A stretch of 64,000 nucleotides of DNA from IMGVR_UViG_3300046787_000200:186001-250000, one strand, 5' to 3'. Positions 14,310 to 34,639 are shown, counted from the first letter of the stretch. A program made the numbers and translations. Notes: generated by a model not told the origin, from the letters alone.

Positions 14310-14354
14310 TAATATAACGATTTTTAGATAAATACTTACTATAAGGAGACTATT

Positions 14355-19901: not shown

Positions 19902-20633
19902 ATGAAAGATTATTTACAAGATTTAATTACACACACTAATGGTCTAGGCAACGTAGACTTGATTAAAGTATCAGGTACTGATACTGAAACTAGTATCAAT
20001 GCAATCGCAGAGAACAAATCTGTTATTGTGTCAGGTACATTGAATAACCCTATCGCTGATTTCATCGGTGTCTTTGGTATGCCTAACTTAGGTAAACTAA
20101 AAACAATTCTAGGTTTTGACGACTATGATGAGAATGCTAAAATCTCAGTAGTACGTACTGACCGTGATGGTGTTAGTGTCCCATCTACAATTCACTTTGA
20201 AACTAAAGATGGATCTTTTGTCAATGATTATCGATTGATGACTAAATCAATCGTTGAAGAAAAAGTTAAAAGTGTCACATTCAAAGGTACTAGCTGGAAC
20301 GTTGAATTTGAGCCTACTATCGCAGGTATTCAACGACTGAAAAAGCAAGCAAGTGCAAATAGTGAAGAAGAACATTTCACATTCACAACAGTTAACGGTG
20401 ACTTGAAGATTAACTTCGGTGACCCGTCAACTCACTCAGGTAACTTTGTGTTTCAGCCGGGTGTTACTGGCTCATTGAGCAAAGCTTGGAACTGGCCTGT
20501 TAAGGTGTTCTTGGCTATCATGGACTTGCCGGGTGATAAGAAGGTTCGTATCGCTGATGCAGGTGCAACAGAGATTATTGTTGATAGTGGCTTAGCTACT
20601 TACACATATCTATTACCAGCTAATTCAAAATGA
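19902..20633 (+). CDS. Putative sliding clamp (gp45/PCNA-like)
   Basis: 243 aa, beta-rich, follows polB, ends in YLLPA like PCNA-type clamps. Confidence 0.55.
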   Translation: MKDYLQDLITHTNGLGNVDLIKVSGTDTETSINAIAENKSVIVSGTLNNPIADFIGVFGMPNLGKLKTILGFDDYDENAKISVVRTDRDGVSVPSTIHFETKDGSFVNDYRLMTKSIVEEKVKSVTFKGTSWNVEFEPTIAGIQRLKKQASANSEEEHFTFTTVNGDLKINFGDPSTHSGNFVFQPGVTGSLSKAWNWPVKVFLAIMDLPGDKKVRIADAGATEIIVDSGLATYTYLLPANSK

Positions 20634-20992
20634 TTGACTACGTATACGGAGGTGAGTTCCTAATCATTAATAGTAATAGGGGTTCATCACCTTATATTAA
20701 CAATAGTAACCCTATTACAGGTACTGTAGCATACGACTCTAGTAGTCAGACGTTGAAAGTCTATGATGGTAGTAGTTTTCAAACATTAGGTGGTGGAAGT
20801 GCTCATATCAATCTAACACCTAATGCTATCGACATCTTAAGGTGGGCTGAACAGAAAATGCTAGAAGAAGCCGAGCGCAACAAATTAGCAGAAACAAATC
20901 CCGCTATTAAAGATTTGATGGAACAGATTAAACAAAAAGAAGAACAAATTAAAATTGTTCAAGCATTGATTAAAGAAGAAGTAAAAGTTTAA
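20630..20992 (+). CDS. Hypothetical protein
   Basis: Coupled 120-aa ORF. Confidence 0.75.
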   Translation: MIDYVYGGEFLIINSNRGSSPYINNSNPITGTVAYDSSSQTLKVYDGSSFQTLGGGSAHINLTPNAIDILRWAEQKMLEEAERNKLAETNPAIKDLMEQIKQKEEQIKIVQALIKEEVKV

Positions 20993-22545
20993 TGGAACAA
21001 GTTAATCTATCAGCCGAACACAAGCCCGATTGGGCATTGTTTCTACCCGCAGTCAGTAGTTTCTACATTGCTGGCTTGGGCAAACAACGTAAGGGAGAAA
21101 ACTATTTCCCACCTGAACGTATTCCTGCAGGCTTTAACGGTGATGTAGAAAAACTAAACTTTCTTAATAGTAAAGAAGGTCTATACACTTATAAGTGGGG
21201 CTTGTATTCTGCAGGTCACGCTAACTTAGATACTACCAAAGACGATTCTAGTGAATCAATCATTAGAGAACGTGAAGAAGGTACATTCATGTTGGGTGAC
21301 AGTGGTGGATTTCAGATTCTTAAATGTCAATGGCCTGCTGACTGGAAAGATCCTAACTGCCCACGTGCTATGGTAAAGCGTAAAGCTGTATTGAACTGGA
21401 TGGACACATACATGGACTATGGTATGTGTTTAGATATCCCATCACAATCTCTCACAACTTATCATATCAAGGATCCTAAGACAGGTAAGAGTGCTCACGG
21501 TATCTCAACTATTGAAGAAGCTATTACTGCAACTCACATCAACAACGAATACTTTATTCAAAATCGTAATGGCAAATGCAAGTTCTTAAACGTACTGCAA
21601 GGTCGTAATCATACACAAAGTGATGATTGGTATGAAGAAATGAAGAAGTATTGTGACCCTAATATTTATCCAGATAATCACTTTAATGGTTGGGCGTTCG
21701 GTGGTCAGAACAAGATTGATGTACATTTGATGTTGCGTAGATTAGTGGGTATCATCCATGATGGACTATTGCAACCAGGCAAACATGATTTGATTCACTG
21801 TTTGGGTGTAAGTATTATGGAATATGCCGTATTGTTTAGCGATATTCAAAAAGCTATTCGTAAGTATCACAACCCAAATCTACAGATTACGTTTGACTGT
21901 GCAAGCCCATTCTTTAGTGCGGCTAAAGGATTAGCTTATTTTAACAACAGCATTGAACACGATAAGAAGTGGGCATACAGTATGGAAAAGACGGCTGAAA
22001 ACAAAGATTATGCTAATGATAATCGGAAATTCAGTGATGCTGTATTAGCTGATGGTATACATGACAAGTTTACAGACAGCCCGGTAACGGACCGTATGTT
22101 GATAAAGGACCTTTGCTATCGAGGTAAAGGCTTCATCGGTCAGCATGGTAAAGAAACTAAAACAAGTTGGGATACACTAAGCTACACCTTACTACAAAGT
22201 CATAATGTTTATATGCATATGACTGCTGTACAAGAAGCTAATCGTCAATATGATAACGGTATCATGCCCAAAATGGTTATGAGCAAGTTTGATGATGAGC
22301 ATTTCGGTCAAATTGTTGATAAGATATTTGCACAAAAAGATAGACAAAAGAGCCTAGATATGATAGAATCACATAGTAGCTTCTGGATGCAAATGAAGTC
22401 AGGTAGTCAGGGCTTAAGTGGTAAGAAAGCAATGAATGCTATGACTATGTTTGATCAATTATTTGAAGTAGCTGATAGTGAGCCGGAAGTTGAAGAAATT
22501 ATTGAAGATAGTGATGATGCTATCAATGAAGTTTTAGGAGACTAA
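20992..22545 (+). CDS. dpdA: TGT-fold guanine transglycosylase, DpdA-like
   Basis: MLGDSGGFQ, CLDIP, LNVLQG, GWAFGG, IHCLG, ITFDCAS; clustered with folE/queD/queE. Confidence 0.75.
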   Translation: MEQVNLSAEHKPDWALFLPAVSSFYIAGLGKQRKGENYFPPERIPAGFNGDVEKLNFLNSKEGLYTYKWGLYSAGHANLDTTKDDSSESIIREREEGTFMLGDSGGFQILKCQWPADWKDPNCPRAMVKRKAVLNWMDTYMDYGMCLDIPSQSLTTYHIKDPKTGKSAHGISTIEEAITATHINNEYFIQNRNGKCKFLNVLQGRNHTQSDDWYEEMKKYCDPNIYPDNHFNGWAFGGQNKIDVHLMLRRLVGIIHDGLLQPGKHDLIHCLGVSIMEYAVLFSDIQKAIRKYHNPNLQITFDCASPFFSAAKGLAYFNNSIEHDKKWAYSMEKTAENKDYANDNRKFSDAVLADGIHDKFTDSPVTDRMLIKDLCYRGKGFIGQHGKETKTSWDTLSYTLLQSHNVYMHMTAVQEANRQYDNGIMPKMVMSKFDDEHFGQIVDKIFAQKDRQKSLDMIESHSSFWMQMKSGSQGLSGKKAMNAMTMFDQLFEVADSEPEVEEIIEDSDDAINEVLGD

Positions 22546-22546
22546 T

Positions 22547-22759
22547 ATGCCATATAAAAATCGTATTAAGACATTAGAAGAATCAGTTAGATTACTAGAT
22601 AATCAAATCTTTCAATTAGAGAAAGCCGGTAATAGTGATCCTGAGAAAATTAAAAAGTTGAGAGAGACTAAAGATAAGTATTTTACCGAATTGCGATTAA
22701 TGAATAGAGCGCAATGGGACAATGACCATAACACAGTAGATTTCGGAGATGACCGATGA
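22547..22759 (+). CDS. Hypothetical coiled-coil protein
   Basis: AGGAG RBS; 70 aa. Confidence 0.7.
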   Translation: MPYKNRIKTLEESVRLLDNQIFQLEKAGNSDPEKIKKLRETKDKYFTELRLMNRAQWDNDHNTVDFGDDR

Positions 22760-23211
22760 ACGAACAAGTATCACAAGCATTAGCTGAAAAACGTCAGCGT
22801 ATTAAAGATAAAGCAATTCGTACAATTTTTGTACGTTTTCAAAAAGAAGGTATTCATAAGTACCCAGCGGCTGCAACAGACCCTAACTTGGCAACAGGTG
22901 ATGAGTATGATGTTAGCTTTCTAGCAACTCCACATCGACACATCTTTCACTTTGAGGTGTCGATTGAAGTGTTTCACAACGACCGTGATATCGAGTTTAT
23001 TCAATTCAAGCGATGGTTAGAGAATCAATATTCTCAAGGCATTCTTGCATTGGATTACAAAAGTTGTGAAATGATTAGTGATGACCTCTATGAAGTTATT
23101 GCAACTCGATATCCAGATCGTAATATCGTTATTCAAGTATCAGAAGATAATGAAAACGGTGCTACGATTGTTTATAACACAACACAACCTTATCAACATC
23201 TAGCTATTTAA
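22756..23211 (+). CDS. dpdL: QueD paralogue, DpdL-like putative CDG decarboxylase
   Basis: LATPHRHIF (LxxxHRHxF instead of CxxxHGH), DRDIEF, SCEM, VSEDNENGA T-fold tail. Confidence 0.7.
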   Translation: MNEQVSQALAEKRQRIKDKAIRTIFVRFQKEGIHKYPAAATDPNLATGDEYDVSFLATPHRHIFHFEVSIEVFHNDRDIEFIQFKRWLENQYSQGILALDYKSCEMISDDLYEVIATRYPDRNIVIQVSEDNENGATIVYNTTQPYQHLAI

Positions 23212-23224
23212 AGGAATTAATAAA

Positions 23225-23431
23225 ATGGCAAAACAACAATATCAATCTAACCCTCGTGTTAATCAAATTTTCGAGGACCTTGAGAACTACTTGGCATTCT
23301 GCCAAGACTTTGGTTACAAGTTTGACGAATCAACCTTGTACGATATGCGTAGTTTCGCATATCGCCAGTTCACTAAAGCAGTGGTAGGCAAGTGGGCTAA
23401 AGATCAATGGGCTGAGGATACTCGTCCATGA
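23225..23431 (+). CDS. Hypothetical protein
   Basis: AAGGA RBS; 68 aa. Confidence 0.7.
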   Translation: MAKQQYQSNPRVNQIFEDLENYLAFCQDFGYKFDESTLYDMRSFAYRQFTKAVVGKWAKDQWAEDTRP

Positions 23432-24195
23432 ACATTGTCTTAGTCACAGGCGGCTTTGACCCACTACATACAGGTCATATCGCTTATTTTAATGCCGCAA
23501 GACAACTAGGCGACAAGCTTATCGTTGGCATCAATAGTGACGAATGGTTGGCTCGCAAGAAGGGTCAACCTTTTATGCCTTATGATGAACGTGCAGGAAT
23601 CATTTGGGCGTTACAAGATGTAGACGGTATCATTAAGTTTGATGATAGTGATAACAGTAGCCGTGATGCTATTGTTAAATTACGTGAACAATGTCCCGAT
23701 GATACTATTATCTTTGCTAATGGTGGCGATAGAAATCAAACAAATATCCCTGAAATGCAAGGATTTGAAGAAGATGCAAACATTCTATTCGCTTTCAATG
23801 TAGGCGGTGATGACAAAAAGAACAGTAGTTCTTGGATTCTACAAGAATGGAAAGCACCCAAAACAGAACGAGATTGGGGATACTATCGTGTTCTACACGA
23901 AGTAGATGGTACTAAAGTAAAAGAACTTACAGTAGAACCAAAACAATCTCTTAGTATGCAGAAACATTCAAAGCGTAGTGAACATTGGATCGTTACTGAA
24001 GGCAAATGCAAGATACGCCGTTATGCTGAAACGGGTGAATTGACTGAGACAGTTCTAAGCAAACATGATACAATCACTATTCAACCTGATGAATGGCATC
24101 AGCTAGTTAACACGTTTAGCAAACCATGTAAAATCGTAGAGATTCAATATGGTAAGAAATGTGTAGAAGAAGATATTAAGAGACAAAATGCGTAA
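23428..24195 (+). CDS. Cytidylyltransferase fused to a mannose-6-phosphate-isomerase-like cupin
   Basis: TGGFDPLHTGH, ANGGDR, NSSS; WGYY, LSMQKH..RSEHW, IVEIQYG. Confidence 0.85.
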   Translation: MNIVLVTGGFDPLHTGHIAYFNAARQLGDKLIVGINSDEWLARKKGQPFMPYDERAGIIWALQDVDGIIKFDDSDNSSRDAIVKLREQCPDDTIIFANGGDRNQTNIPEMQGFEEDANILFAFNVGGDDKKNSSSWILQEWKAPKTERDWGYYRVLHEVDGTKVKELTVEPKQSLSMQKHSKRSEHWIVTEGKCKIRRYAETGELTETVLSKHDTITIQPDEWHQLVNTFSKPCKIVEIQYGKKCVEEDIKRQNA

Positions 24196-25387
24196 ACTAT
24201 TTTACATGGGCCTTGAGCCTTACAAAGCACGATATACATTGCAGTTACAAGACTGGAATGAAGCTGTATTCAAACGCAGGGGCATTGACTATGTTATTGT
24301 TCCGGGCGAAACATTATCTAATGACCAAGCTATTGTTACAGGTCAAGTACTAGACGCACATGGTCGCACATACTTTGGTATGAGTCAACTTATGAATCTA
24401 GTTAAGATGATGAAGCAAGGTGATGTAGGCGCAGGTGATATAGTTTATTTTGAAGATATGTTTCAGCCGGGCATTGAATCATTGCCCTACATTATGAAAC
24501 AGATTCCGATCACAAGTCGTCCTAAGATTTTTGTTCGATGTCTAGCACAATCTATTGACCCTGATGATTTCGTACACGTATGGGGTATGAGTGAGTTCAT
24601 GGGTCACTATGAGAAGATGGTTGATAGTTTTGCTGATGGTGTGCTTGCTAGTAACGAAGAAATGGTCATGCATATGAAGATTGCGGGTTGGAAGGCACCG
24701 ATCTACAATATCTCAGGCTTAGCGTTTGGTAAGAGTGAAGTACGAGGACGTGTCGGTAATGCTATCAAACCATTCAATGAGCGTAAGATGCGTATTGCAT
24801 TCAGTGCTCGTTGGGATCAGGAAAAGCAACCAGACTTCTACATGGATGTGATTGAAGAATTCTTTGACCGTTATGGTTATAAGGATCGTTATGGTGTACC
24901 TCGCAATGTAGAATTCTGTGTATTCAGTGGCAGTGCTTTAAAAAGCAACAATGATAGTTACATGAAGCGCACCAAAGAAATGCAAAGTCGTGGTATGTTA
25001 CGTATATACGAAGACCTAGATAAGAATGCATATTATGGGTTGTTGAATGATACTAGAATATTGTTTAACTGTGCTTTGCAAGATTGGGTAAGTAACACAG
25101 TAAGTGAAGCAGATGCATTGGGTTGTAATGTATTGTATCCCGCATATCGTAGTTTCCCTGAAACATTTGCGAATGACTATACAAGACTTTATACGCCCTG
25201 GAGTGTTGAAGATGCGGCAATTAAGTTGTATAATATGTTACATCAGCCGCATATGAATCAAGGAAAGATTAGTGATTGGACTGATGGTACAATCGATAGA
25301 ATTTGCGATATCCTAGAAGGTAACGGACAACAATGGTTGCGTATGGATAGTGATTATCGTAAACACACCCGTGAAGCAAAATATTAA
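24188..25387 (+). CDS. GT-B fold glycosyltransferase
   Basis: ARWDQEKQP; QDWVSNTVSEADALGC; YRSFPE. Confidence 0.75.
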   Translation: MRKLFYMGLEPYKARYTLQLQDWNEAVFKRRGIDYVIVPGETLSNDQAIVTGQVLDAHGRTYFGMSQLMNLVKMMKQGDVGAGDIVYFEDMFQPGIESLPYIMKQIPITSRPKIFVRCLAQSIDPDDFVHVWGMSEFMGHYEKMVDSFADGVLASNEEMVMHMKIAGWKAPIYNISGLAFGKSEVRGRVGNAIKPFNERKMRIAFSARWDQEKQPDFYMDVIEEFFDRYGYKDRYGVPRNVEFCVFSGSALKSNNDSYMKRTKEMQSRGMLRIYEDLDKNAYYGLLNDTRILFNCALQDWVSNTVSEADALGCNVLYPAYRSFPETFANDYTRLYTPWSVEDAAIKLYNMLHQPHMNQGKISDWTDGTIDRICDILEGNGQQWLRMDSDYRKHTREAKY

Positions 25388-25397
25388 GGAGAAAATT

Positions 25398-25592
25398 ATG
25401 AGCGCACAAAATGATATTGAAACAAGCTTGGCAGCATACAATGCTGAGAATGATAAGTTTAACAAAGGTAATGCAGCCGCTGGCACTCGTGCTCGTAAAG
25501 CATTAGCAGAGTTAGCTAAAGCAGTTAAGGCTCGCCGTAATGAAATTACAGCAGAAAAAGCCGCACGTGCTGAAGCAAAAGCTAAGGCTTAA
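25398..25592 (+). CDS. Histone H1-like (Hc1/HctA family) protein
   Basis: KFNKGNAAAGTRARKAL.EL; AAGGAG RBS. Confidence 0.75.
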   Translation: MSAQNDIETSLAAYNAENDKFNKGNAAAGTRARKALAELAKAVKARRNEITAEKAARAEAKAKA

Positions 25593-25594
25593 TC

Positions 25595-25825
25595 ATGGCA
25601 ACCAGCAAGAAGAAATCAGGTAATGTTCCTTCTGGTGGTTGGCCCAAGATAGTTCAGGGTACTCATCTCACTGTGAAAACATTTGAAGATGGGCACACTG
25701 AATTAGTTTGGGATTGGGACGCATTAGTTAATGAAGTCCGTGAAGCTTGTGCTAATGTAGAACTTGCTAACATGAAGCCTGCAGTTCGGGCTAAATCTAA
25801 AAAATCAGTTACTAAATCAAAGTGA
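25595..25825 (+). CDS. Hypothetical protein
   Basis: 76-aa ORF in the operon. Confidence 0.65.
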   Translation: MATSKKKSGNVPSGGWPKIVQGTHLTVKTFEDGHTELVWDWDALVNEVREACANVELANMKPAVRAKSKKSVTKSK

Positions 25826-25857
25826 TAAATAATTGTGCTACACAACGGTAGCACAAT
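25826..25857 (+). promoter_or_regulatory. Late promoter core plus perfect 10-bp leader hairpin before folE
   Basis: TAAATA then ATTGTGCTAC-ACAACG-GTAGCACAAT. Confidence 0.55.
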
Positions 25858-25891
25858 GTCAAAACAAAACCATCACAAAGGAAGGTTATCT

Positions 25892-26572
25892 ATGAGTTAT
25901 AATAAAACAAAAACAGATCCAGAGTTGGGTCAACAAGTGCATGAGCACTTAGTAAAAATGGGTGTTGAGACACCCACAAAACCAAACAAACTTATTCGCA
26001 CAGATAAGATTCATATCATTGAAGGTCATTTCAAATCTATCATGGAAACTCTAGGGTTAGACTTAGAAGATGATAGTCTTATGGATACACCTAAGCGTGT
26101 TGCTAAGATGTATGTAAATGAAATCTTTTGGGGACTTGATTACGAAGCATTCCCTAAATGTACAACAGTTGACAACAAGATGCAATACAACGAAATGGTT
26201 GTAGAGCGTAATGTTAATGTTCAATCTAACTGTGAACATCATTTTGTAGTAATCGATGGATTGGCTACTGTAGCTTATGTCCCTAAGCAAAAAGTTTTAG
26301 GGCTTAGTAAGATTAACCGTATCGTAGAATATTTCAGTAAACGTCCTCAAATTCAGGAACGCTTAACAGAGCAGATATTTCACACCTTACAGTTCATCCT
26401 TGATACAGAAGATGTTGCAGTTATGATTGATGCACAACACTATTGCGTGAAATCACGTGGTGTAGAAGATACAGGTAGCTCTACTGTTACATGTCGTTTA
26501 GGTGGTGGATTCAAAACTGACCCAGCCGCAAGACAAGAATTCTTGCAAATTGCTAATAAAGGTTGCAAATGA
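25892..26572 (+). CDS. folE: GTP cyclohydrolase I
   Basis: TPKRVAKM, SNCEHHF, GLSKINR, RPQIQERLT, HYCVKSRGV. Confidence 0.97.
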   Translation: MSYNKTKTDPELGQQVHEHLVKMGVETPTKPNKLIRTDKIHIIEGHFKSIMETLGLDLEDDSLMDTPKRVAKMYVNEIFWGLDYEAFPKCTTVDNKMQYNEMVVERNVNVQSNCEHHFVVIDGLATVAYVPKQKVLGLSKINRIVEYFSKRPQIQERLTEQIFHTLQFILDTEDVAVMIDAQHYCVKSRGVEDTGSSTVTCRLGGGFKTDPAARQEFLQIANKGCK

Positions 26573-26700
26573 TTCTCACTCTACTAATCTCAATCGCAGT
26601 AGTGGTTGGTGTTGTAGTGTTGTTTGCTACAATGCCAAATAATAGTAAATGTAACGGCAATTGCAATCAAGGTCGTAATTGCACATGTAAGGATCAATAA
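26569..26700 (+). CDS. 43-aa membrane peptide with CxxxCNQGRxCxC motif (not in ORF track)
   Basis: ATGA-coupled; hydrophobic N-terminus, Cys-rich tail. Confidence 0.65.
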   Translation: MILTLLISIAVVVGVVVLFATMPNNSKCNGNCNQGRNCTCKDQ

Positions 26701-26918
26701 TGGGACTAGTATATAAAGAAGTTGAAGTTGATGTTGATTTAGAAGATTTTGACACTGACGAACTGATTGAAGAATTAGAACGCCGAGGTACTGGTGCTGT
26801 AGATTATGGTAATGGTACAGAAGTGTTACAAACAATCTATGAAAAGCGTAGACTAGGATTAGATTATCAACGAGAACTAGACCAATTAATATGGCTAGGT
26901 TTAGGGAGAGTTGTATAA
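26700..26918 (+). CDS. Hypothetical protein
   Basis: EVEVDVDLEDFDTDELIEELERRG; coupled. Confidence 0.7.
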   Translation: MGLVYKEVEVDVDLEDFDTDELIEELERRGTGAVDYGNGTEVLQTIYEKRRLGLDYQRELDQLIWLGLGRVV

Positions 26919-27154
26919 TGGGGTATCGTAAACAAATGGATTATAACGCAGTACATCATCAAATCTATATGAGTGGTGTAGAATTGCATAGCAACTACAA
27001 TGATGGTTTCAATCAATTTGAAATCAAAAAAGACCTACATCGCATCAAGTGGTTGTTAGATGAGATTCTAGTAGACAGTCCTACATTCGTTGGTGAAGAA
27101 GAATTCTTAAAAGAACACGAACAAACTAAAATGTGGAGGACTCTTTCAAAATGA
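26918..27154 (+). CDS. Hypothetical protein
   Basis: TAATG coupling; GGAG RBS. Confidence 0.7.
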   Translation: MGYRKQMDYNAVHHQIYMSGVELHSNYNDGFNQFEIKKDLHRIKWLLDEILVDSPTFVGEEEFLKEHEQTKMWRTLSK

Positions 27155-27624
27155 TTTTCAATCACATTAAAGAATTAAAAGCACAAGGAAAGAAGATCGG
27201 TATTACTTTTAGTACATTTGATCTTTTACATGCCGGTCATGTAGCTATGTTGAGTGAAGCAAAGAATCATTGTGATTACTTAATTTGTGGACTGCAAACT
27301 GACCCTACAATTGATCGACCTGATACTAAGAACAAACCAATTCAAAGTATTGTAGAACGACAGATTCAATTAGCGGCTTGTCGCTATGTTGATGAAGTAG
27401 TTGTATATCAAACTGAACAGGACCTCATTGACCTACTGCTTATTCTACCATTAGATGTTCGCATTTTGGGCGTAGAGTATGCAGATAAAGAGTTTACCGG
27501 AAGATGGGAAGGTAGTGAGCGCGGCATTGAACTTGTGTTCAATGGTCGTGACCATAGTTTCAGTAGTAGTAGTTTAAGAAAACGAGTAGCAGATGCTCAA
27601 ATTATAAATACACTTAATAAATAA
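27151..27624 (+). CDS. Glycerol-3-phosphate cytidylyltransferase-like (TagD family)
   Basis: TFDLLHAGH, CRYVDEV, RDHSFSSSSLR. Confidence 0.85.
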   Translation: MIFNHIKELKAQGKKIGITFSTFDLLHAGHVAMLSEAKNHCDYLICGLQTDPTIDRPDTKNKPIQSIVERQIQLAACRYVDEVVVYQTEQDLIDLLLILPLDVRILGVEYADKEFTGRWEGSERGIELVFNGRDHSFSSSSLRKRVADAQIINTLNK

Positions 27625-27625
27625 T

Positions 27626-28420
27626 ATGCCAAAAAGAATACTAATAATGGGTCTTCCAGGATCCGGAAAAACATACCTAGCACAGCACATTGTAGACCAT
27701 CTACAAGCTGAAAAGAAAAAAGTTGGTTGGTTAAATGCCGATGACGTTCGTAAAAAGTACAACGATTGGGACTTTAGTACTGAAGGTCGTATTCGTCAAA
27801 GCCATCGTATGCGTGAATTAGCAGATGCAATGACTAATGTTGATTATGTGATATGTGACTTTGTTGCACCACTTGTTGAAATGCGTAACAACTTCAAAGC
27901 AGACTGGACTATTTGGGTTGATACCATTGACAAAGGTCGTTTTGAAGATACTAATAAAGCCTTTATTCCACCTGATGTATATGACTTTAGAATCACAGAA
28001 CAACATGGTGAAAAGTGGGGTGAGTTCATTGCCGCACATATCTTAGATAATAGACGCAGACCGATATTTGATTGGCAAAAAGAAACAGTACAGATGTTAG
28101 GCCGCTGGCAACCATGGCATGAAGGACATCGTAAATTATTTGAACGATCTATTGCCAAGACAGGACAGGTTGTAATACAGATACGTGATTGTCAAGGATG
28201 GAATGGTTCTAATCCATTTGCCATCGAACAAGTAAAGAACTTTATTAAACGTGATTTAGATATGTTATATCAAGGTCAATATGAAATTCAAATTGTTCCA
28301 AATATTGTTAATATTACATATGGTCGTGATGTTGGATATAAGATTGAACAAGAAACTTTTGATGATGCTACACATTCTATTAGTGCCACAAAGATTCGCA
28401 AGGAGATGGGCCTTAAGTAA
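27626..28420 (+). CDS. Adenylylsulfate-kinase-like P-loop domain fused to an HxGH nucleotidyltransferase
   Basis: GLPGSGKT, LNADDVRK, DFSTEGR; GRWQPWHEGH, ISATKIR. Confidence 0.8.
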   Translation: MPKRILIMGLPGSGKTYLAQHIVDHLQAEKKKVGWLNADDVRKKYNDWDFSTEGRIRQSHRMRELADAMTNVDYVICDFVAPLVEMRNNFKADWTIWVDTIDKGRFEDTNKAFIPPDVYDFRITEQHGEKWGEFIAAHILDNRRRPIFDWQKETVQMLGRWQPWHEGHRKLFERSIAKTGQVVIQIRDCQGWNGSNPFAIEQVKNFIKRDLDMLYQGQYEIQIVPNIVNITYGRDVGYKIEQETFDDATHSISATKIRKEMGLK

Positions 28421-29010
28421 TGTTTTCTGATTTGAAGTTACCTATAGTAATTATTTCATCAATACGTACAGGATCTACCGGCCTTCTTTTTGAATTAGAA
28501 AAGATATTTTTAGAAAAGGGTATCAGTCCTGTAGTATTAAATGAACCTATAGTATATAACAACAAATCAGATTCAGTTATACCATTTTTAAAATCTATCA
28601 ATACTAATCAATTTATTCTTAAAGTACATGCATATGATTTACAATATTACCCAAAATATTTTATTAAAAAACTAGAAAATAATTCATATAATATTATAAG
28701 ATTGCGTAGAAAATCAATAATTGATCAATGCTTAAGTTTATATATTAGTCTATATACAAAAATTTGGATTAATACTACTGAAACAAATAAACAGTTAGAA
28801 AATACTACTATTGAAATATCTGAACAATTATTACATAAAACAATTGAGGATGTTAAAAAATTTAATAAAGCTATTGATAATTGTGCATATAAATTTTCAT
28901 TAGATTTAATCTATGAGGATTTGGAATTAACAAAAACGTTTACGGTAAAAAGAAAAACGTCAATAACATACGAAGAACTAAGAAGTCGTATTTCCAAAAT
29001 GATTACATGA
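28420..29010 (+). CDS. Sulfotransferase-like protein (AT-rich)
   Basis: SSIRTGSTGL 5'-PSB-like loop; LRRKSIIDQCLS 3'-PB-like; YEDL. Confidence 0.6.
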   Translation: MFSDLKLPIVIISSIRTGSTGLLFELEKIFLEKGISPVVLNEPIVYNNKSDSVIPFLKSINTNQFILKVHAYDLQYYPKYFIKKLENNSYNIIRLRRKSIIDQCLSLYISLYTKIWINTTETNKQLENTTIEISEQLLHKTIEDVKKFNKAIDNCAYKFSLDLIYEDLELTKTFTVKRKTSITYEELRSRISKMIT

Positions 29011-29023
29011 GTTAAATATCACA

Positions 29024-29089
29024 ACCGGTCTCTTTGGGCTCACCCCGGTATACAAATTCTGCGTCCTATGCTATAATCTAACATAGGAG
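29024..29089 (+). ncRNA. Candidate preQ1-I-like riboswitch variant with anti-SD hairpin
   Basis: ACCGG/CCGGT stem, loop U...CACC, A-rich tail; TCCTATG/CATAGGA stem covers the SD; TAAATA at 29013. Confidence 0.5.
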
Positions 29090-29095
29090 AAATCA

Positions 29096-29578
29096 ATGGC
29101 AAATAAAAAATTCTTTTCAACAAAAACATACAGACAAATAGGTCCTGTCGCATACCGTCAATGGCGTGCTGATAGTCATTGTAATTTGATTCATGGCTAT
29201 GCTATGAGTTTTCACTTTGAGTTTGAAGCCGACACACTAGATGCTCGTAATTGGGTAACTGACTTCGGTGGACTACGCCCACTTAAAGATAAACTAGAAG
29301 AATGGTTTGACCATACTCTATTAGTCGCACAAGATGATCCTATGCGTGATGAACTATTGCGTTTAGGTGAATTGAAACTAGCAAAGATTACAGAAGTAGA
29401 ACGCACTGGCTGTGAAGGTATTGCTGACTTCTTGTATGAATACATTAACACAATCTTCTTGCCCAATTGCGGTAGTGAAGAAGCTAAACGTGTATGGTGC
29501 TGTAGAGTAGAGGTCCGTGAGACTGATAGTAATATGGCAGGGCGTGGTGGTCACCGAGAAGATAGAGAGTTTGAATGA
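29096..29578 (+). CDS. queD: 6-carboxy-5,6,7,8-tetrahydropterin synthase
   Basis: SHCNLIHGY (CxxxHG), WVTDFGGL, FDHT, VEVRET. Confidence 0.9.
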   Translation: MANKKFFSTKTYRQIGPVAYRQWRADSHCNLIHGYAMSFHFEFEADTLDARNWVTDFGGLRPLKDKLEEWFDHTLLVAQDDPMRDELLRLGELKLAKITEVERTGCEGIADFLYEYINTIFLPNCGSEEAKRVWCCRVEVRETDSNMAGRGGHREDREFE

Positions 29579-30750
29579 GCAAAAGAGTAGCAGTAATCGG
29601 TGCAGGCATTACCGGCATCACAACAGCATATTACCTTGCTAAACAAGGTTATCAAGTACACGTGTACGAACAAGAGCCTTACCCCGCAATGCGTACTAGC
29701 TTTGCTAACGGGGGTCAGGTCTCTGTAAGTAACAGCGAAGTATGGACTACATGGAGTAACGTCAAGAAGGGCATCAAGTGGCTCTTTAAGAAAGATGCTC
29801 CACTACTCATTCGCCCTCGTTTAGATTTCAAACAATGGAAGTGGATCGCAAAGTTCTTATACAATACTGCCACCAATCAGTATGAAAAGAACACTAGCGA
29901 AACAATTAAAATGGGCCTAGAATCTAGTAAGTTGTACAAAGAGATTATTTACACAGAGAAACTATCGTTCGACCAATCACCTAGTGGCATCTTGCACTTC
30001 TACAAAGACGACCAATACTTTGAAGCCGCTAAACAAGCACAAACTATCTATCGTAGTAATGGTTGCGAGTGGGATATTGTTAGTACACAAAAAGTTAAAG
30101 AACTAGAAAGTAAACTAGAATCTGTTAAAGGTATTGTAGGTGGTGCTTGGACATTAAGTGATTGGACCGGAGACATTCACAAGTTTTGTATTGAACTAGA
30201 GAAAGTATTAAAGAAGAAATACGGTGTAGCCTTCATTTACAATACAACAGTTACCAAAGAGTATATGCAACAGCTAGTTAATTTGTATGATAGTGTTGTT
30301 GTGTCAGCGGGTGTAGGTAGCGTTGAAATTGCTAAGTATGTCGGTGATAACCTTGATATATATCCAGTCAAGGGTTATAGTATCACTATTAACAACGTAG
30401 ATAAGAAACACTTACCTATCGTTAGTCTATTAGATGACCAGGCAAAGATTGTTACATCAACATTGGGCAACAAGTTCCGTGTTGCAGGTACTGCTGAACT
30501 TGCAGGTGAGAACTACGATATCAGACACGATAGAGTTAAACCACTATTAGATTGGGTAAGAACTAACTTCCCGAATATCAATACGCATGATTACAGTAGT
30601 TGGGCTTGCTTGCGACCAATGACTCCTAATATGATGCCTATTACCAAATGTAGTGACAAGAATAGTAAAGTGTACTATAATACAGGACACGGTCACTTAG
30701 GCTGGACATTAGCACCATACACAGCAAAACTTATTTCGGAACAAATATGA
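29575..30750 (+). CDS. dadA: D-amino acid dehydrogenase (FAD-dependent)
   Basis: GAGITG, TSFANGGQ, YPVKGYS, RVAGTAE, LRPMTP, NTGHGHLGWT. Confidence 0.88.
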   Translation: MSKRVAVIGAGITGITTAYYLAKQGYQVHVYEQEPYPAMRTSFANGGQVSVSNSEVWTTWSNVKKGIKWLFKKDAPLLIRPRLDFKQWKWIAKFLYNTATNQYEKNTSETIKMGLESSKLYKEIIYTEKLSFDQSPSGILHFYKDDQYFEAAKQAQTIYRSNGCEWDIVSTQKVKELESKLESVKGIVGGAWTLSDWTGDIHKFCIELEKVLKKKYGVAFIYNTTVTKEYMQQLVNLYDSVVVSAGVGSVEIAKYVGDNLDIYPVKGYSITINNVDKKHLPIVSLLDDQAKIVTSTLGNKFRVAGTAELAGENYDIRHDRVKPLLDWVRTNFPNINTHDYSSWACLRPMTPNMMPITKCSDKNSKVYYNTGHGHLGWTLAPYTAKLISEQI

Positions 30751-31595
30751 GTCATTTAAAAGTATCAGAGTTATTTTACAGCATTCAAGGTGAGGGTAGA
30801 TACATGGGTGTTCCCTCCGTGTTCTTACGAACATATGGATGTAATTTTACATGCGGTGGATTCGGCATGTCTAAGGGAGAAGTTAGTAGTGAGAGAGATG
30901 TTATTGCGATTAAAGCAGAAGATTATACAGATTATAAATCCCTACCGCTTGTCAGTACGGGATGTGATAGTTACGCAAGTTGGGACCCTAGGTTTAAACA
31001 TCTTAGTCCTGTGCTCACTACCGATGCTATTGCTAGTAGCATTATGGATATACTTCCTCATGGGCGTTGGATGGATGAGCATCTTGTTATTACAGGTGGT
31101 GAACCTCTTCTCGGTTGGCAAAGAGCGTATCCAGAATTACTTTCGCATGAAAAAATGAAGGCATTGAAAGAGATTACATTTGAAACTAACGGCACACAAG
31201 AACTGAGTCAAGACCTTAAAGTATATCTACAACAATGGAAGATCAACAGAGAAAAGAATGCATTAACATTTAGTGTAAGCCCTAAATTAAGCATTAGCGG
31301 TGAGAAGTGGGAAGAAGCAATTCGTCCTGAGATTATTCATCAATATGAAAGTATAGGCTTTGTATATTTGAAGTTTGTTATTGCTACGAGTGAGGATGCA
31401 CTTGAAGCAGATAAGGCAGTTAAAGAATATCGTCACAGAGGATTTAGAGGGCCAGTATACTTTATGCCATGCGGTGGTGTAGAATCACTTTACAATCTAA
31501 ATGCTAAGAATGTAGCTATTGAAGCAATGAATCGAGGATATAGATACAGTGATAGATTGCAAGTGCCGTTGTTTAAAAATGAATGGGGAACATAA
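30747..31595 (+). CDS. queE: 7-carboxy-7-deazaguanine synthase (radical SAM)
   Basis: ELFYSIQGEG, FLRTYGCNFTC...CDS (insert in the Cys motif), TGGEP, ETNGT, SPKL. Confidence 0.92.
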   Translation: MSHLKVSELFYSIQGEGRYMGVPSVFLRTYGCNFTCGGFGMSKGEVSSERDVIAIKAEDYTDYKSLPLVSTGCDSYASWDPRFKHLSPVLTTDAIASSIMDILPHGRWMDEHLVITGGEPLLGWQRAYPELLSHEKMKALKEITFETNGTQELSQDLKVYLQQWKINREKNALTFSVSPKLSISGEKWEEAIRPEIIHQYESIGFVYLKFVIATSEDALEADKAVKEYRHRGFRGPVYFMPCGGVESLYNLNAKNVAIEAMNRGYRYSDRLQVPLFKNEWGT

Positions 31596-31794: not shown

Positions 31795-32895
31795 ATGAGT
31801 TATTTATTTACAAGTGAGAGCGTATCGGAGGGACACCCTGATAAAATTGCAGATGCAATTAGTGATAAAGTATTAGATTTAGTAATGACACATGAGGATC
31901 GAGCATTACGTTGTGCATGTGAAACATTGGTTACTACTAATCGTGTTATTGTTGCAGGTGAGTATAAAGGAGTATTGCACAACGAAGCCGTAGAAAATGC
32001 TGTACGTGATGTTATTAAAGATGTAGGTTATGAACAATTAGGTTTTGATTGGCGTACAGTAGAGATTACTAATCTATTGCACGGACAAAGTGCTGATATT
32101 GCGTTAGGTACAGATACGTTTGGTGCAGGTGATCAAGGATTAATGTTTGGCTATGCATGCAATGAAACAGATGTACATATGCCCTCAGCTATCTATTGGG
32201 CGCATCGTATTGTAGAAGAACTAACACAGATTCGTAAGTCAGGGTCAGTTGAATGGTTAGGTCCAGATGCTAAAAGTCAAGTAACATTTGAATATAACGA
32301 TGACAATACACCTAAGCGTATTAGTAAAGTAGTGTGTTCAACGCAACACAGTGAAGGTATTGATATCAATTCAGTTAGAATGGGTGTTGAGAATATCATT
32401 CGAGGAATACTACCGGAACAATATTTAGACAATGAAACTGAATTCTTTATTAACCCAACTGGTCGATTTGTTATCGGTGGTCCTGATGGTGACACTGGGC
32501 TTACTGGCCGTAAGATTATCGTTGATACTTATGGTGGGTATAGCCCTCATGGTGGCGGAGCCTTCAGTGGCAAAGATCCTACTAAAGTGGATAGGTCTGC
32601 TGCCTACATGATGCGATATATTGCTAAAAATATTGTAGCAAGCGGACAAGCAAACTGGGCTACTTGTCAGATTAGTTATGCTATTGGTATGGCACAACCT
32701 ATGAGTTTCTACATTGAAACTGCACATACTGAACAAAGTCGCACACTAACAAAATGGGTACAAGACAATGTTGATTTGACACCTAACGGTATCATTGATC
32801 GTTTTGATTTGTTTAGACCGATCTATAGTAGCACAACTAACTATGGTCACTTTGGTAAGCCAGACTTGCCTTGGGAAAAAGTAGATTTGTTCTAA
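31795..32895 (+). CDS. metK: S-adenosylmethionine synthetase
   Basis: FTSESVSEGHPDK, GAGDQG, GGGAFSGKDPTKVDRS. Confidence 0.98.
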   Translation: MSYLFTSESVSEGHPDKIADAISDKVLDLVMTHEDRALRCACETLVTTNRVIVAGEYKGVLHNEAVENAVRDVIKDVGYEQLGFDWRTVEITNLLHGQSADIALGTDTFGAGDQGLMFGYACNETDVHMPSAIYWAHRIVEELTQIRKSGSVEWLGPDAKSQVTFEYNDDNTPKRISKVVCSTQHSEGIDINSVRMGVENIIRGILPEQYLDNETEFFINPTGRFVIGGPDGDTGLTGRKIIVDTYGGYSPHGGGAFSGKDPTKVDRSAAYMMRYIAKNIVASGQANWATCQISYAIGMAQPMSFYIETAHTEQSRTLTKWVQDNVDLTPNGIIDRFDLFRPIYSSTTNYGHFGKPDLPWEKVDLF

Positions 32896-33131: not shown

Positions 33132-33311
33132 ATGTATGAGTTAAGATATCTTGTCCGTCCTGGTTGGGATGGACCTGAAAAAGTGTTACAATATAGAACA
33201 CAGATTGAAGTTTCTGATTATAGTGCAGTAAATCCTAGAACTAGTGACTATATTAGAAAACTTGAATGGACAGAATGGCGTGACGTGCCAGTAGTAGATG
33301 AAACAAAATGA
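33132..33311 (+). CDS. 59-aa hypothetical protein (not in ORF track)
   Basis: GAGG RBS; VLQYR...EWRDVPVV; ATGA-coupled to the next gene. Confidence 0.65.
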   Translation: MYELRYLVRPGWDGPEKVLQYRTQIEVSDYSAVNPRTSDYIRKLEWTEWRDVPVVDETK

Positions 33312-34639
33312 GAACATACGATAAACGCATTGGATTTTTAGTAAGCTATCAAACACTAATACCGCATGGTGGTATTGGACAATTTACAAAAAGTTTTTGT
33401 GAGTTGATGGATAGTCATAACATTAAAGTAGATATCATTACTGATAAGTTACCCCAAGACAATGAGTTTATTAAATCTATTCCGACTAATATTATAGCAC
33501 CAGCAGAATCATTACGATATACTGAGCATAGTAATATTTTTATGTATGGTGATACTTTCTGTTATGAACGTATGGCTAACTTCCGTAATAGTATTATTAA
33601 AGCATTGAGTAGTAATTTATATGATGCATTAGTTTGCAATACATACGAGACTGTTCAAGTGGCTAGCACTATGGGTCTTGATGATTGCATTCAAATCATC
33701 GCATATACTCATTTAGAAAGTCAAATCTTTAAAGATACAAAGAACCCTTTCTTATACAATACAAATGCAATGATGCGACAGCAATTAGATACACCGGGAG
33801 TATATGTAGGGACTCAAAGTAAATTTAATCAATTGAATATCAGTGATACTGCGTATCATCTTCCTATCCCTATTACAGAGAAATCATTATTAGAAGAATA
33901 TCACGGACCACGTGAAGGTGTATTATTCGTTGGTCGTTGGGAAGAAGGCAAGAACCCTGAATTGTTTATTGACTTAATTGAACAGACTGGGTTGCCTGCT
34001 AAGGTTATGACTAGTCCTAATGGTGTAAAGAAGTTTGAAGATAGACTAGCAAAAATTGGTGCTGTGTTTGATGTTCGTTCTAGTATCATTGGTCAAGAGA
34101 AAGTTGATTTCATCAAGTCAAGTCGTATTGCATTTAATCCTAGTGTAGTCGAAAGTTATGGCATGGCATTCTATGAACAACACATTCAATTGCCTACGTT
34201 AGTATTAGAGAGCCAACGATGGACTAAAAACTTCAATGAAGATTTCTTTTACAAATGCACAAAGAAAGACATGGCTAAGAGTGCACAAGAGTTATATGAT
34301 AGTTTTGAGAAACCAGAAACTTGGTATAACTTAGGATCATTGGATCATGCTAAACAGCAAGAAGATAGTGTATTTCACAAGTGGAATAGTTGCTTCCGTG
34401 AATTTCAGCCTAAGTTATCTAACAGTAATACAGCTAAAATTTGTAATGAAACAACTATTACACATTCTGACTTCATTGAAAATCTAGGTCGTAGTGTAAT
34501 TTGTATTGATGATGTTCGTAGCGTGTTGACCAACAAACATAAGTTTAGAGTTATCTATACAGACAATGACACTTATTTAACTAAAGATCCAGTCTTTGAA
34601 CCAGCAGAAGAAACTAGTGAGGAATTATTTCAGTGGTAA
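33308..34639 (+). CDS. GT4-like glycosyltransferase
   Basis: HGGIGQF, LFVGRWEEGKNP, PSVVESYGMAFYE. Confidence 0.8.
   Translation: MRTYDKRIGFLVSYQTLIPHGGIGQFTKSFCELMDSHNIKVDIITDKLPQDNEFIKSIPTNIIAPAESLRYTEHSNIFMYGDTFCYERMANFRNSIIKALSSNLYDALVCNTYETVQVASTMGLDDCIQIIAYTHLESQIFKDTKNPFLYNTNAMMRQQLDTPGVYVGTQSKFNQLNISDTAYHLPIPITEKSLLEEYHGPREGVLFVGRWEEGKNPELFIDLIEQTGLPAKVMTSPNGVKKFEDRLAKIGAVFDVRSSIIGQEKVDFIKSSRIAFNPSVVESYGMAFYEQHIQLPTLVLESQRWTKNFNEDFFYKCTKKDMAKSAQELYDSFEKPETWYNLGSLDHAKQQEDSVFHKWNSCFREFQPKLSNSNTAKICNETTITHSDFIENLGRSVICIDDVRSVLTNKHKFRVIYTDNDTYLTKDPVFEPAEETSEELFQW

Follow-up and report, generated by a model that had tools for sequence, protein, structure and literature searches.

How might an uncultured 352-kb freshwater jumbo phage modify the guanine of its DNA, and does the glycosyltransferase gene found beside its 7-deazaguanine genes indicate that a sugar is added to the modified base? 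We addressed this question in a 64,000-nucleotide window (the whole stretch of DNA analysed, IMGVR_UViG_3300046787_000200:186001-250000; positions below are counted from its first letter), in which the original prediction placed a 7-deazaguanine DNA-modification cluster without QueC at 20992-31595. That observation held, since all the genes it named are present, on the + strand, at or near the positions given for them. However, four genes inside the interval had not been mentioned, and the functional unit runs further, to 35466. Moreover, queC, queF, a type I phosphoribosyltransferase (PRTase) and a second DpdA-like gene are absent not only from the window but from the whole 352,012-bp record, which CheckV rates 100% complete.

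The locus lies in the replication module. A family B DNA polymerase gene (polB, 17116-19824; Pfam DNA_pol_B 4e-40, exonuclease domain 1e-22) is found upstream, and is present in 50 of 51 relatives with at least 8 kb upstream of the glycosyltransferase. It is followed by a 243-aa probable sliding clamp (gp45/PCNA-like, 19902-20633), which has no Pfam hit, matches phrog_12062 at 4e-30 and is 31% identical to a PA5oct protein annotated as structural; its assignment rests on Atlas feature neighbours, which are sliding-clamp/PCNA clusters at 0.93-0.98. Next comes a 517-aa, long-form DpdA-like transglycosylase of the TGT superfamily (20992-22545), proposed to swap guanine in DNA for the 7-deazaguanine base. 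On its own it has no Pfam, PHROG or NCBIfam hit, but it carries the DSGGFQ motif, and D103, S104, G105, G106, Q108, D148, G204, H269-x-L271-G272 and D302 are invariant across 12 DpdL-linked homologues; the protein thus keeps the TGT catalytic residues. The family profile matches only tRNA-guanine transglycosylase chains in the PDB (45 hits, best E 0.003, aligned over the catalytic core), and the Atlas neighbours are TGT (0.93) and DpdA (0.89). This protein is 33% identical to PA5oct QCG76197 and 28% to the Phosso protein, with both of which it groups, but only 16-18% identical to DpdA3 proteins.

The adjacent 151-aa gene product (22756-23211) is DpdL, a QueD/T-fold paralogue with the LxxxHRHxF motif (LATPHRHIF), which belongs to the family defined in PMC10516641. 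It matches phrog_17812 at 1e-31, and tblastn gave 54% identity to ACP17 DpdL (6e-39) and 36% to phiST DpdL (3e-5). DpdL has been proposed, but never shown, to be a 7-carboxy-7-deazaguanine decarboxylase. The enzymes expected to act before it are encoded downstream: FolE, GTP cyclohydrolase I, which converts GTP to H2NTP (25835-26572; NCBIfam NF006824 329 bits against a cut-off of 202, Pfam 7e-62); QueD, the CPH4 synthase of the PTPS family (29096-29578; Pfam PTPS 7e-16, 70% identical to ACP17 QueD); and QueE, the radical-SAM 7-carboxy-7-deazaguanine (CDG) synthase (30747-31595; phrog_2076 QueE-like 1.5e-53 over the full length, NCBIfam QueE models at 1e-11 to 3e-14, all below their cut-offs, and 33% identity to the PA5oct protein annotated as CDG synthase). 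QueD has CxxxHGY in place of CxxxHGH, a variant shared by 71 relatives and by the phiST and RHph_I1_18 QueD proteins.

The new part of this locus is a 399-aa protein (GT399, 24188-25387), a confidently modelled GT4-like GT-B glycosyltransferase (AF2 pLDDT 94.7, pTM 0.93) for which Foldseek returned MshA, BshA and PimA at E 5e-13 to 1e-10. The best BFVD hits are an unnamed 370-aa viral protein (TM 0.78-0.84) and the ACP17 neighbour of DpdL (TM 0.71-0.82), with phage DNA alpha-glucosyltransferases among the weaker fold matches. The donor-site-like residues R208, K213 and E307 are conserved in 112 sequences, the N-terminal acceptor domain is very highly conserved, and the family comprises 785 clusters at 50% identity. 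GT399 is preceded by a conserved 68-aa protein of unknown function (23225-23431; no family hit, present in 47 of 51 relatives with enough upstream sequence) and by a cytidylyltransferase-like domain fused to a cupin of the type II mannose-6-P isomerase C-terminal type (23428-24195; Pfam CTP_transf_like 6e-14 and MannoseP_isomer 4e-22), whose stop overlaps the GT399 start by 8 bases. The nearest PDB chains of this fusion are ethanolamine-phosphate and glycerol-3-phosphate cytidylyltransferases, and it is present in 14 of 44 relatives.

Independence of the GT399 distribution from dpdA had been named in advance as grounds for rejecting a role in the pathway, and the result was in favour of such a role. 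Of the IMG/VR loci selected by the GT and having at least 4 kb on both sides, 46 of 46 carry DpdL and DpdA, and 5 of 5 diverged metagenomic GT representatives (30-40% identity) have a DpdL gene within about 1.4 kb on the same short contig. Conversely, 37 of 40 DpdL-selected loci have the GT within 3.4 kb, with a median of 415 bp. In GenBank phages of six lineages (PA5oct-like phages, ACP17, X1, BUCT-ZZ01, Phosso and BCSR5), the GT lies within about 2.7 kb of dpdL, and is adjacent to it in four. Many of the co-occurring loci belong to one broad clade, so that the number of independent lineages is about 10-14 and not hundreds. The linkage is nevertheless to dpdL rather than to dpdA; one 417-kb relative (90% complete) has dpdL, the GT and a PRTase but no detectable DpdA. 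DpdL does occur without the GT, for example in Cellulophaga phage phiST, which lacks it anywhere in its genome and still makes 2'-deoxy-7-deazaguanosine (dDG) at 100% replacement; the GT is thus not needed for dDG, looks like an optional add-on downstream of DpdL and probably acts after dDG formation.

A second GT-B enzyme, a GalE-like epimerase and the two cytidylyltransferase-like enzymes complete a plausible sugar supply. The second GT4-like GT-B glycosyltransferase (GT443, 33308-34639) has an extra C-terminal domain of about 70 aa, an AF2 pLDDT of 85.3 and Foldseek matches to MshA, WlaC and BshA at E about 3e-11; it is present in 23 of 44 relatives, and a 40% homologue lies inside the BUCT-ZZ01 deazaguanine cluster, next to folE. 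Its end overlaps the start of a GalE-like NAD-dependent sugar-nucleotide epimerase gene (34633-35466; NCBIfam GalE 161 bits against a cut-off of 262, Pfam Epimerase 3e-34). The epimerase is present in 40 of 44 relatives and directly follows a GT in 35 loci, starting within 300 bp after GT399 in 14 and after GT443 in 21. Among the genes overlooked by the original prediction, a second cytidylyltransferase-like enzyme of TagD, ECT or HldE domain II type (27133-27624; Pfam CTP_transf_like 7e-12, PDB 3elb 1.5e-18 and 1coz 4.5e-12) is found in 24 of 44 relatives, and an APS-kinase-like P-loop kinase fused to an NMNAT-like nucleotidyltransferase (27626-28420; Pfam APS_kinase 1.8e-11, phrog_10255 2e-52, PDB 2yvu APS kinase 1.4e-7 and NMNAT 2e-4), whose role in the system is uncertain, in 8 of 44. 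The other two are a Stf0-like sulfotransferase candidate (28420-29010), which has no HMM hit but resembles Sulphotransf (PF09037) clusters in Atlas features (0.97) and structure (TM 0.72-0.81), and a DadA-like FAD-dependent oxidoreductase between queD and queE (29575-30750; NCBIfam NF009074 D-amino acid dehydrogenase 453 bits against a cut-off of 494, Pfam DAO 6e-58). The former was found in 0 of 80 relatives sampled and is probably an insertion, while the latter is present in 2 of 80, at the same site. MetK, a SAM synthetase that could supply SAM to QueE (31795-32895; all three Pfam SAM-synthetase domains, 6e-32 to 3e-59), is likewise present in only 2 of 80 relatives. These three genes are rare or unique insertions and not conserved parts of the system.

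Taken together, the interpretation offered by the original prediction, namely that the DNA carries dDG or dCDG, possibly further glycosylated, is partly supported. The gene calls are right, including the TGT fold, the DpdL motif and both GT-B enzymes, and the combination of FolE, QueD, QueE, DpdL and a DpdA-like protein without QueC is the published signature of dDG-type modification (PMC10516641), dDG fitting better than dCDG because DpdL is present. What our analysis establishes is the gene content and the linkage; the chemistry is inferred throughout. From their enzyme families, FolE, QueD and QueE would turn GTP into CDG. From a proposal in the literature, DpdL would, with no QueC available, remove the carboxyl group to give 7-deazaguanine, which the DpdA-like transglycosylase would exchange for guanine in phage DNA, giving dDG. 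From gene linkage only, we infer that GT399 then adds a sugar from a nucleotide-activated donor to the deazaguanine product, most likely once it is in DNA, helped in this phage clade by the epimerase, GT443 and the cytidylyltransferase-like enzymes. The result would be an undescribed, sugar-bearing 7-deazaguanine that shields the genome from restriction enzymes and possibly from defences that recognise plain dDG.

We give this reading a probability of about 0.5. In its support, the nearest cultured relative of the locus, that of the Pseudomonas jumbo phage PA5oct (Wroclawvirus), has the same polB, clamp-like, DpdA-like, GT, DpdL (54%), QueE order, and PA5oct DNA resists several restriction enzymes in a way that points to a modified G of unknown chemistry (PMC12191111). 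PA5oct differs in having a cluster PRTase, and no epimerase or second GT is annotated in the flank examined. In addition, the only thymidylate-synthase-family gene of the genome is a near-consensus ThyA (356 bits), so there is no sign of a hydroxymethyl-pyrimidine pathway that the GTs could serve instead. On the other hand, dDG offers no hydroxyl in the major groove, while GT4-like enzymes normally glycosylate oxygen, and co-expression of dpdL and dpdA from phiST or ACP17 gave no dDG. The GT family is on average acidic (median pI 5.8), which does not suggest a DNA-binding enzyme, and the 417-kb relative without detectable DpdA suggests that in some phages the partner chemistry may run through nucleotides or free bases. 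Furthermore, other than the epimerase, the sugar-supply genes vary among relatives, and the two cytidylyltransferase-like enzymes resemble CDP-alcohol or ADP-heptose enzymes more than sugar-1-phosphate uridylyltransferases.

The alternative that survives best, although we consider it unlikely, is that the cluster makes plain dDG as in phiST, and that the two GT-B enzymes, the epimerase and the nucleotidyltransferases serve another target (host envelope glycans, virion proteins or a metabolite), lying here only because phage auxiliary genes collect in this region. It is consistent with full dDG replacement in phiST without a GT and with the absence of an obvious glycosyl acceptor. The space between the core genes does take up unrelated insertions (DadA-like, MetK, sulfotransferase, and HNH genes in relatives), and GT443, the second cytidylyltransferase-like enzyme and the cytidylyltransferase-cupin are present in only a third to a half of relatives. 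However, GT399 is not a casual neighbour: it lies within about 2.7 kb of dpdL in every assessable GT-selected context, none of our GT-selected samples lacked DpdL, and this holds across lineages whose DpdA-like proteins are under 20% identical and whose backbones differ (T4-like ACP17, the jumbo phages PA5oct, Phosso and BCSR5, and BUCT-ZZ01).

More doubtful is the possibility that GT399 acts on a small molecule, before or instead of DNA insertion, glycosylating the free deazaguanine base, a nucleotide or a pterin intermediate, the product then being inserted by DpdA or used as a nucleotide after phosphoribosylation in relatives that carry the cluster PRTase. The linkage of the GT to DpdL, a base- or pterin-binding T-fold protein, rather than to DpdA, the 417-kb relative and the acidic character of the family would fit this view, and the strong conservation of the N-terminal acceptor domain is expected for a small defined acceptor. 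GT4-fold enzymes that glycosylate pterins exist, and a tetrahydrobiopterin glucosyltransferase appears among the fold matches of GT443. Nevertheless, DpdL lacks the catalytic Cys needed for PTPS/QueD-type pterin chemistry, this genome has no PRTase, and inserting a glycosylated base would need a very large DpdA pocket; a complex prediction for GT399 with DpdL gave no answer. Finally, that the TGT-like protein modifies tRNA or manipulates the host queuosine pool while phage DNA carries normal G is very unlikely, even though TGT-superfamily enzymes are classically tRNA enzymes and the protein matches neither the Pfam TGT model nor the DpdA model above threshold, because its gene lies between polB plus the clamp and dpdL in a conserved order, its nearest cultured homologue is in PA5oct, every studied phage with FolE, QueD, QueE and a DpdA family member modifies DNA (PMC10516641), and no normal tRNA substrate (preQ0 or preQ1) can be made without QueC or QueF.

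Compared with the described DpdL systems, the locus shares FolE, QueD, QueE, DpdL with LxxxHRHxF, a TGT-superfamily DpdA, the lack of QueC and the position next to the replicative polymerase, and ACP17 also carries a GT399 family member between its DpdA and DpdL. It differs in its DpdA-like protein, which is only 16-18% identical to those of phiST, ACP17 and X1, and in the epimerase, second GT-B and nucleotidyltransferases added in this clade; the main text of the 2023 paper does not contain the word stem 'glycosyl'. In T-even phages, base replacement is also followed by sugar transfer to DNA by GT-B fold enzymes (alpha- and beta-glucosyltransferases), sometimes two acting in turn, with an anti-restriction role, but the acceptor is a hydroxymethyl group on a pyrimidine made before replication, whereas here there is no hydroxymethylase and the base is a purine analogue. 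In vertebrate tRNA, queuosine, a 7-deazaguanine derivative already in a nucleic acid, is converted to mannosyl-Q and galactosyl-Q, the mannosyltransferase being a GT4-family GT-B protein; the sugar goes onto the cyclopentenediol hydroxyl, a side chain that cannot be made here because there is no QueC, QueF, QueA or QueG. In the dADG system of Campylobacter phage CP220, the pathway is also cut off at CDG and diverted to a base other than preQ0 with a DpdA family member (DpdA3), but CP220 uses a QueC homologue to make the amide, while in the present genome no QueC-family gene exists and DpdL is present.

The locus lies within bases 186001-250000 of a single 352,012-bp IMG/VR virus record that CheckV rates as complete. 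The GC content is about 37% and nearly all genes are on the + strand. The same sequence was found in freshwater and estuary metagenomes, only as assembled contigs and with no nanopore run listed among them. The phage is uncultured, and a megablast search of the interval against GenBank phages found no match. Around the cluster are genes of replication and repair, encoding a family B polymerase, a clamp-like protein, UvdE, a 5'-3' exonuclease and an ATP-dependent ligase.

The original prediction was that of a 7-deazaguanine DNA-modification cluster lacking queC, in which a long TGT-fold protein and a QueD paralogue are accompanied by folE, queD, queE, two glycosyltransferase (GT) genes, a cytidylyltransferase-cupin, an epimerase and metK. 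As an observation it held, since every gene named is present. FolE scores 328.6 bits against NF006824, above the curated cut-off of 202. QueD (29096-29578) is a PTPS-family protein (Pfam PTPS 58.8 bits, cut-off 22.4), but it scores below the cut-off of the NCBIfam QueD model and its motif reads CNLIHGY. Indeed, the QueD proteins of this clade (71 sequences), of phiST, which does make dDG, and of RHph_I1_18 read CxxxHGY where the QueD signature is CxxxHGH (6307-6936 in locus L086 and 5919-6497 in locus L087 of our comparison); the third zinc-ligand position differs in DpdL-type phages. QueE matches the phage QueE-like family phrog_2076 over its full length (1.5e-53), whereas all NCBIfam QueE models score below their cut-offs and the Pfam Radical_SAM match is weak; read by eye, its cysteines form Cx3C followed by a third Cys after about 36 residues, and no standard Cx(2-14)CxxC motif was found. 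MetK has all three SAM-synthetase domains, the 255-aa protein is a cytidylyltransferase-like domain fused to a cupin of the mannose-6-phosphate-isomerase C-terminal type (NT-cupin), and the epimerase is nearest to GalE. The 151-aa protein carries LATPHRHIF, that is, the LxxxHRHxF signature replacing CxxxHGH that Cui et al. 2023 (PMC10516641) used to define DpdL. By tblastn it finds the DpdL of ACP17 (54%, 6e-39) and of phiST (36%, 3e-5), and it aligns with the phiST, ACP17, X1, BCSR5 and BUCT-ZZ01 DpdL proteins with conservation of the H, HxH, E, SCE and E positions. It also has the gene context described for DpdL, with DpdA-like, FolE, QueD and QueE genes but no QueC. QueC, QueF, type I phosphoribosyltransferases (PRTases) and any second DpdA-like gene are absent from the whole genome.

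The 517-aa protein matches no curated family on its own, as direct Pfam, PHROG and NCBIfam scans and a single-sequence PDB search gave nothing. Aligned with eleven other proteins encoded near dpdL in other phages, it shows the TGT catalytic core, namely the DSGGFQ aspartate, the substrate-binding Asp, the LGxG segment and the nucleophile Asp, with D103-S-G-G-F-Q108, D148, H269-x-L-G272 and D302 invariant in the 12 homologues. A profile of that alignment matches only tRNA-guanine transglycosylase chains in the PDB (45 hits, best E 0.003), aligned on the same motifs of Z. mobilis TGT, and protein-language-model neighbours in the Atlas point the same way. By contrast, only one of the 12 family members reaches the Pfam TGT model (PF01702), at E 0.041. 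It is therefore a TGT-superfamily, DpdA-like protein. Its identity is only 16-18% to the DpdA3-type proteins of phiST, ACP17, X1 and BUCT-ZZ01 and to the BCSR5 protein, against 29-35% within its own group, which comprises the PA5oct and Phosso proteins, and we leave it unassigned to DpdA3 or any other DpdA subfamily.

The two large proteins without annotation, of 399 aa (GT399) and 443 aa (GT443), likewise gave no hit in direct Pfam, PHROG and NCBIfam scans, and a single-sequence PDB search of GT399 was negative, so that profiles and fold predictions were needed. For GT399, an exhaustive search of cluster representatives returned 785 clusters at E up to 0.001, from which a 112-sequence alignment was built. 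The AlphaFold2 model has a pLDDT of 94.7, and Foldseek places it with retaining GT4 GT-B enzymes (MshA, BshA, PimA, glycogen and sucrose-phosphate synthases) at E 1e-13 to 1e-10, with a probability of 1.00 and TM 0.6-0.66 to MshA, BshA and PimA. Among viral models, the two best matches are an unnamed 370-aa viral protein and the ACP17 neighbour of DpdL. R208 and K213 are invariant and E307, the first Glu of the EX7E-type motif, is at least 90% conserved in the 112 sequences, and the family profile aligns the R208/K213 segment to the corresponding segment of WlaC and GlgM; by analogy with GT4 enzymes, these residues would bind the donor. GT399 itself did not match Pfam Glycos_transf_1 even at E up to 1, although some family members do reach this model, for example those labelled P0278 (27.7 bits) and P0300. 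The GT443 model (pLDDT 85.3) also folds as a GT4-like GT-B with the same matches, together with a small extra C-terminal domain. Thus, both proposed glycosyltransferases were confirmed at the level of predicted fold.

Four genes inside the interval had not been mentioned in the prediction. The first is a second cytidylyltransferase-like gene, NT163 (27133-27624), whose nearest solved relatives are ethanolamine-phosphate and glycerol-3-phosphate cytidylyltransferases. The second encodes a fusion of an APS-kinase-like P-loop kinase with an NMNAT-like (HxGH) nucleotidyltransferase (27626-28420). It is followed directly by the gene for a 196-aa candidate sulfotransferase, which gave nothing in the direct scans but resembles Stf0 enzymes by Atlas features and structure, and for which the Atlas shows large virus-only clusters of similar proteins. 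Together (27626-29010) they could form a phage-encoded PAPS-making and sulfate-transfer module. The fourth is a DadA-like FAD-dependent oxidoreductase gene (29575-30750) between queD and queE, with 453 bits to the D-amino-acid dehydrogenase model, just under its cut-off; it is at the same site in only two relatives (loci L063 and L083) and is probably a recent insertion.

To separate conserved from accessory genes, 80 IMG/VR relatives were retrieved through GT399. Among loci with enough flanking sequence, polB (50 of 51), the clamp, DpdA-like and DpdL genes (each 51 of 51) and a 68-aa protein (47 of 51) lie upstream, whereas QueE (41 of 44), the epimerase (40 of 44), FolE (39 of 44) and QueD (37 of 44) lie downstream. 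GT443 (23 of 44), NT163 (24 of 44), the NT-cupin (14 of 44) and the kinase fusion (8 of 44) are accessory. The DadA-like gene and metK each occur in 2 of the 80 relatives and the sulfotransferase-like gene in none. The epimerase starts within 300 bp after GT399 in 14 loci and after GT443 in 21. The core is therefore composed of the deazaguanine genes, GT399 and the epimerase, and the space between queD and queE is a hot spot for insertions.

Whether the glycosyltransferase is distributed independently of dpdA had been posed beforehand as a test, and we found that GT399 follows DpdL. An HMM of the GT399 family finds members near dpdL in six GenBank lineages: PA5oct (directly after the DpdA-like gene), ACP17 (between DpdA and DpdL), X1, BUCT-ZZ01 (65% identity) and Phosso (directly after DpdL), and BCSR5 (about 2.7 kb from dpdL, beside its DpdA-like gene). 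BUDD, like X1, has a tblastn match about 1.6 kb from its dpdL. Moreover, five diverged metagenomic representatives (30-40% identity), chosen without regard to context, each lie on a short contig with a DpdL gene within about 1.4 kb, three of them directly adjacent. All 46 GT-selected IMG/VR loci with at least 4 kb on both sides hold DpdL and DpdA. In the other direction, a DpdL alignment including QueD and PA5oct was too divergent for a scan of the collection, but a narrower one was effective, and 37 of 40 DpdL-selected IMG/VR loci hold the GT. Across all loci the GT lies at most 3.4 kb from dpdL, with a median of 415 bp. Many of the IMG/VR loci belong to one broad clade, and clustering DpdL at 70% identity leaves 19 assessable groups, of which 14 always have the GT. 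DpdL does occur without the GT, as no match was found anywhere in the genomes of phiST, RHph_I1_18, Bakedbeans and Ahp1. This pattern, in which the GT was never seen without DpdL but DpdL was sometimes seen without the GT, is what an optional step downstream of DpdL would give, and not what a chance neighbour would give.

In phiST, which has DpdL and no GT, all G is replaced by dDG (PMC10516641). The decarboxylase role of DpdL is a prediction from the literature: co-expression of dpdL and dpdA from phiST or ACP17 in E. coli gave no dDG, and the authors allowed that further enzymes may be needed. For PA5oct, a modified G was inferred by the authors from queE and PTPS genes, without identification of the base (PMC12191111). 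We found no paper, among open-access publications, linking a glycosyltransferase to DpdA or DpdL or reporting a glycosylated deazaguanine in DNA.

Taken together, these data suggest that GTP is converted to H2NTP by FolE, to CPH4 by QueD and to CDG by QueE, that CDG would be converted to 7-deazaguanine by DpdL, that guanine in DNA would be exchanged for this base by the DpdA-like enzyme, and that a sugar would then be transferred by GT399 from an NDP-sugar that the GalE-like epimerase can interconvert, GT443 possibly adding a second one. While the gene content, the conserved residues and the linkage of GT399 to DpdL come directly from our analysis, the first three conversions are inferred from family membership, decarboxylation by DpdL is the proposal of the literature, action of the DpdA-like protein on DNA is inferred from its TGT catalytic residues and from its context (next to polB, the clamp and dpdL, with the nearest homologue in PA5oct, for which a modified G was inferred), and sugar transfer is our own inference from linkage alone, in the absence of chemical evidence. 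We give the whole chain a probability of about 0.5, the deazaguanine DNA modification by itself being much more likely. The proposal that the DNA carries dDG or dCDG, possibly glycosylated to a new base, is partly supported. dDG has no obvious hydroxyl acceptor, and the GT family is acidic. A pre-replicative nucleotide route in this genome is rejected for now, since it has no PRTase. However, a small type I PRTase family lies inside the deazaguanine clusters of PA5oct, BUCT-ZZ01 (annotated XGPRT) and many IMG/VR relatives (13946-14380 in locus L003, 7081-7554 in L001, and in L100, L101, L145 and about 30 other loci), where it could recycle the guanine released by DpdA or make deazaguanine nucleotides.

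Among the alternatives, it is possible, although we consider it unlikely, that only plain dDG is made and that the glycosyltransferases serve something else. A hidden hydroxymethyl-pyrimidine acceptor of the T-even type is unlikely, since the only thymidylate-synthase-family gene is a near-consensus ThyA (356 bits), as judged by this score rather than by the residues that separate methylase from hydroxymethylase, and no other sign of such a pathway was found. Less likely than plain dDG alone is the glycosylation of a small-molecule intermediate. A version in which the GT works on a free base or a nucleotide is kept open by one jumbo phage relative, L101 (IMGVR_UViG_3300031088_000008, 416,714 bp, 90% complete), which has polB, clamp, DpdL, GT399, FolE, PRTase and QueE but in which the profile of DpdA-like proteins finds no such gene anywhere in the record; either its DpdA is very diverged or it uses a nucleotide (pre-replicative) route. 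A tRNA-directed enzyme appears very improbable.

The deazaguanine core belongs to an already described system, from which this locus differs by the DpdL-linked GT module and by the long PA5oct-type DpdA-like protein. A more far-reaching and tentative possibility is that the GT399 family marks a new DNA hypermodification, a 7-deazaguanine carrying one or more sugars, which in this genome might be further decorated given the neighbouring sulfotransferase-like and APS-kinase-like genes. To our knowledge this would be the first sugar-bearing purine analogue in any DNA, and it would be present in very abundant freshwater jumbo phages as well as in cultured phages such as PA5oct, ACP17, X1, BCSR5, BUCT-ZZ01 and Phosso. 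Because decarboxylation by DpdL would free the electron-rich C7 position, the link could even be a C-glycoside, which would explain why the GT is tied to DpdL rather than to DpdA. 7-deazaguanine DNA is a major phage route around restriction enzymes, and bacteria have evolved glycosylases and nucleases that recognise it; a sugar on this base would be a further layer in that arms race and would add a new base to the known chemistry of DNA. It would also offer a candidate identity for the modified G of PA5oct and a possible reason why dpdA plus dpdL alone gave no product in E. coli for ACP17. Moreover, GT399 next to dpdL is a gene marker that is very abundant in freshwater viromes (thousands of sequences at 76-93% identity, on contigs of 300-360 kb), and enzymes that glycosylate 7-deaza-dG in DNA would be useful tools, as 7-deaza-dG is easy to put into synthetic DNA.

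In Xanthomonas phage X1, a 177-aa PAPS-reductase-fold protein is encoded right after folE in the deazaguanine cluster (locus L085, 4846-5379). This ATP-pyrophosphatase fold is related to that of QueC; the protein may be a short QueC-like enzyme, so that X1 may make a base other than dDG despite having DpdL and GT399. DpdL also occurs fused to unrelated domains, with about 260 aa at the N-terminus in Vibrio phage Bakedbeans (L088, 6224-7405) and about 250 aa at the C-terminus in a metagenomic contig (L096, 1030-2142); neither extra domain matches Pfam, GT399 or DpdA. In the present phage, a 792-aa protein (10615-12993) carries an Amidoligase_2 domain (7e-10), but its role in the pathway is rejected for now, since it is followed by an endolysin-like protein and an endonuclease and no linkage to the deazaguanine genes was seen. 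A 305-aa protein (36425-37342) has an SAGSG stretch and a VGNPPF motif, as in N6-adenine DNA methyltransferases, with only a weak D12-class Pfam hit (E 0.07), and was not found in the 80 relatives. Finally, the DpdA-like protein and GT399 (20992-25387) each have thousands of metagenomic homologues at 76-94% identity on contigs of 300-363 kb, and this phage therefore belongs to a very abundant and well-conserved freshwater jumbo-phage clade.
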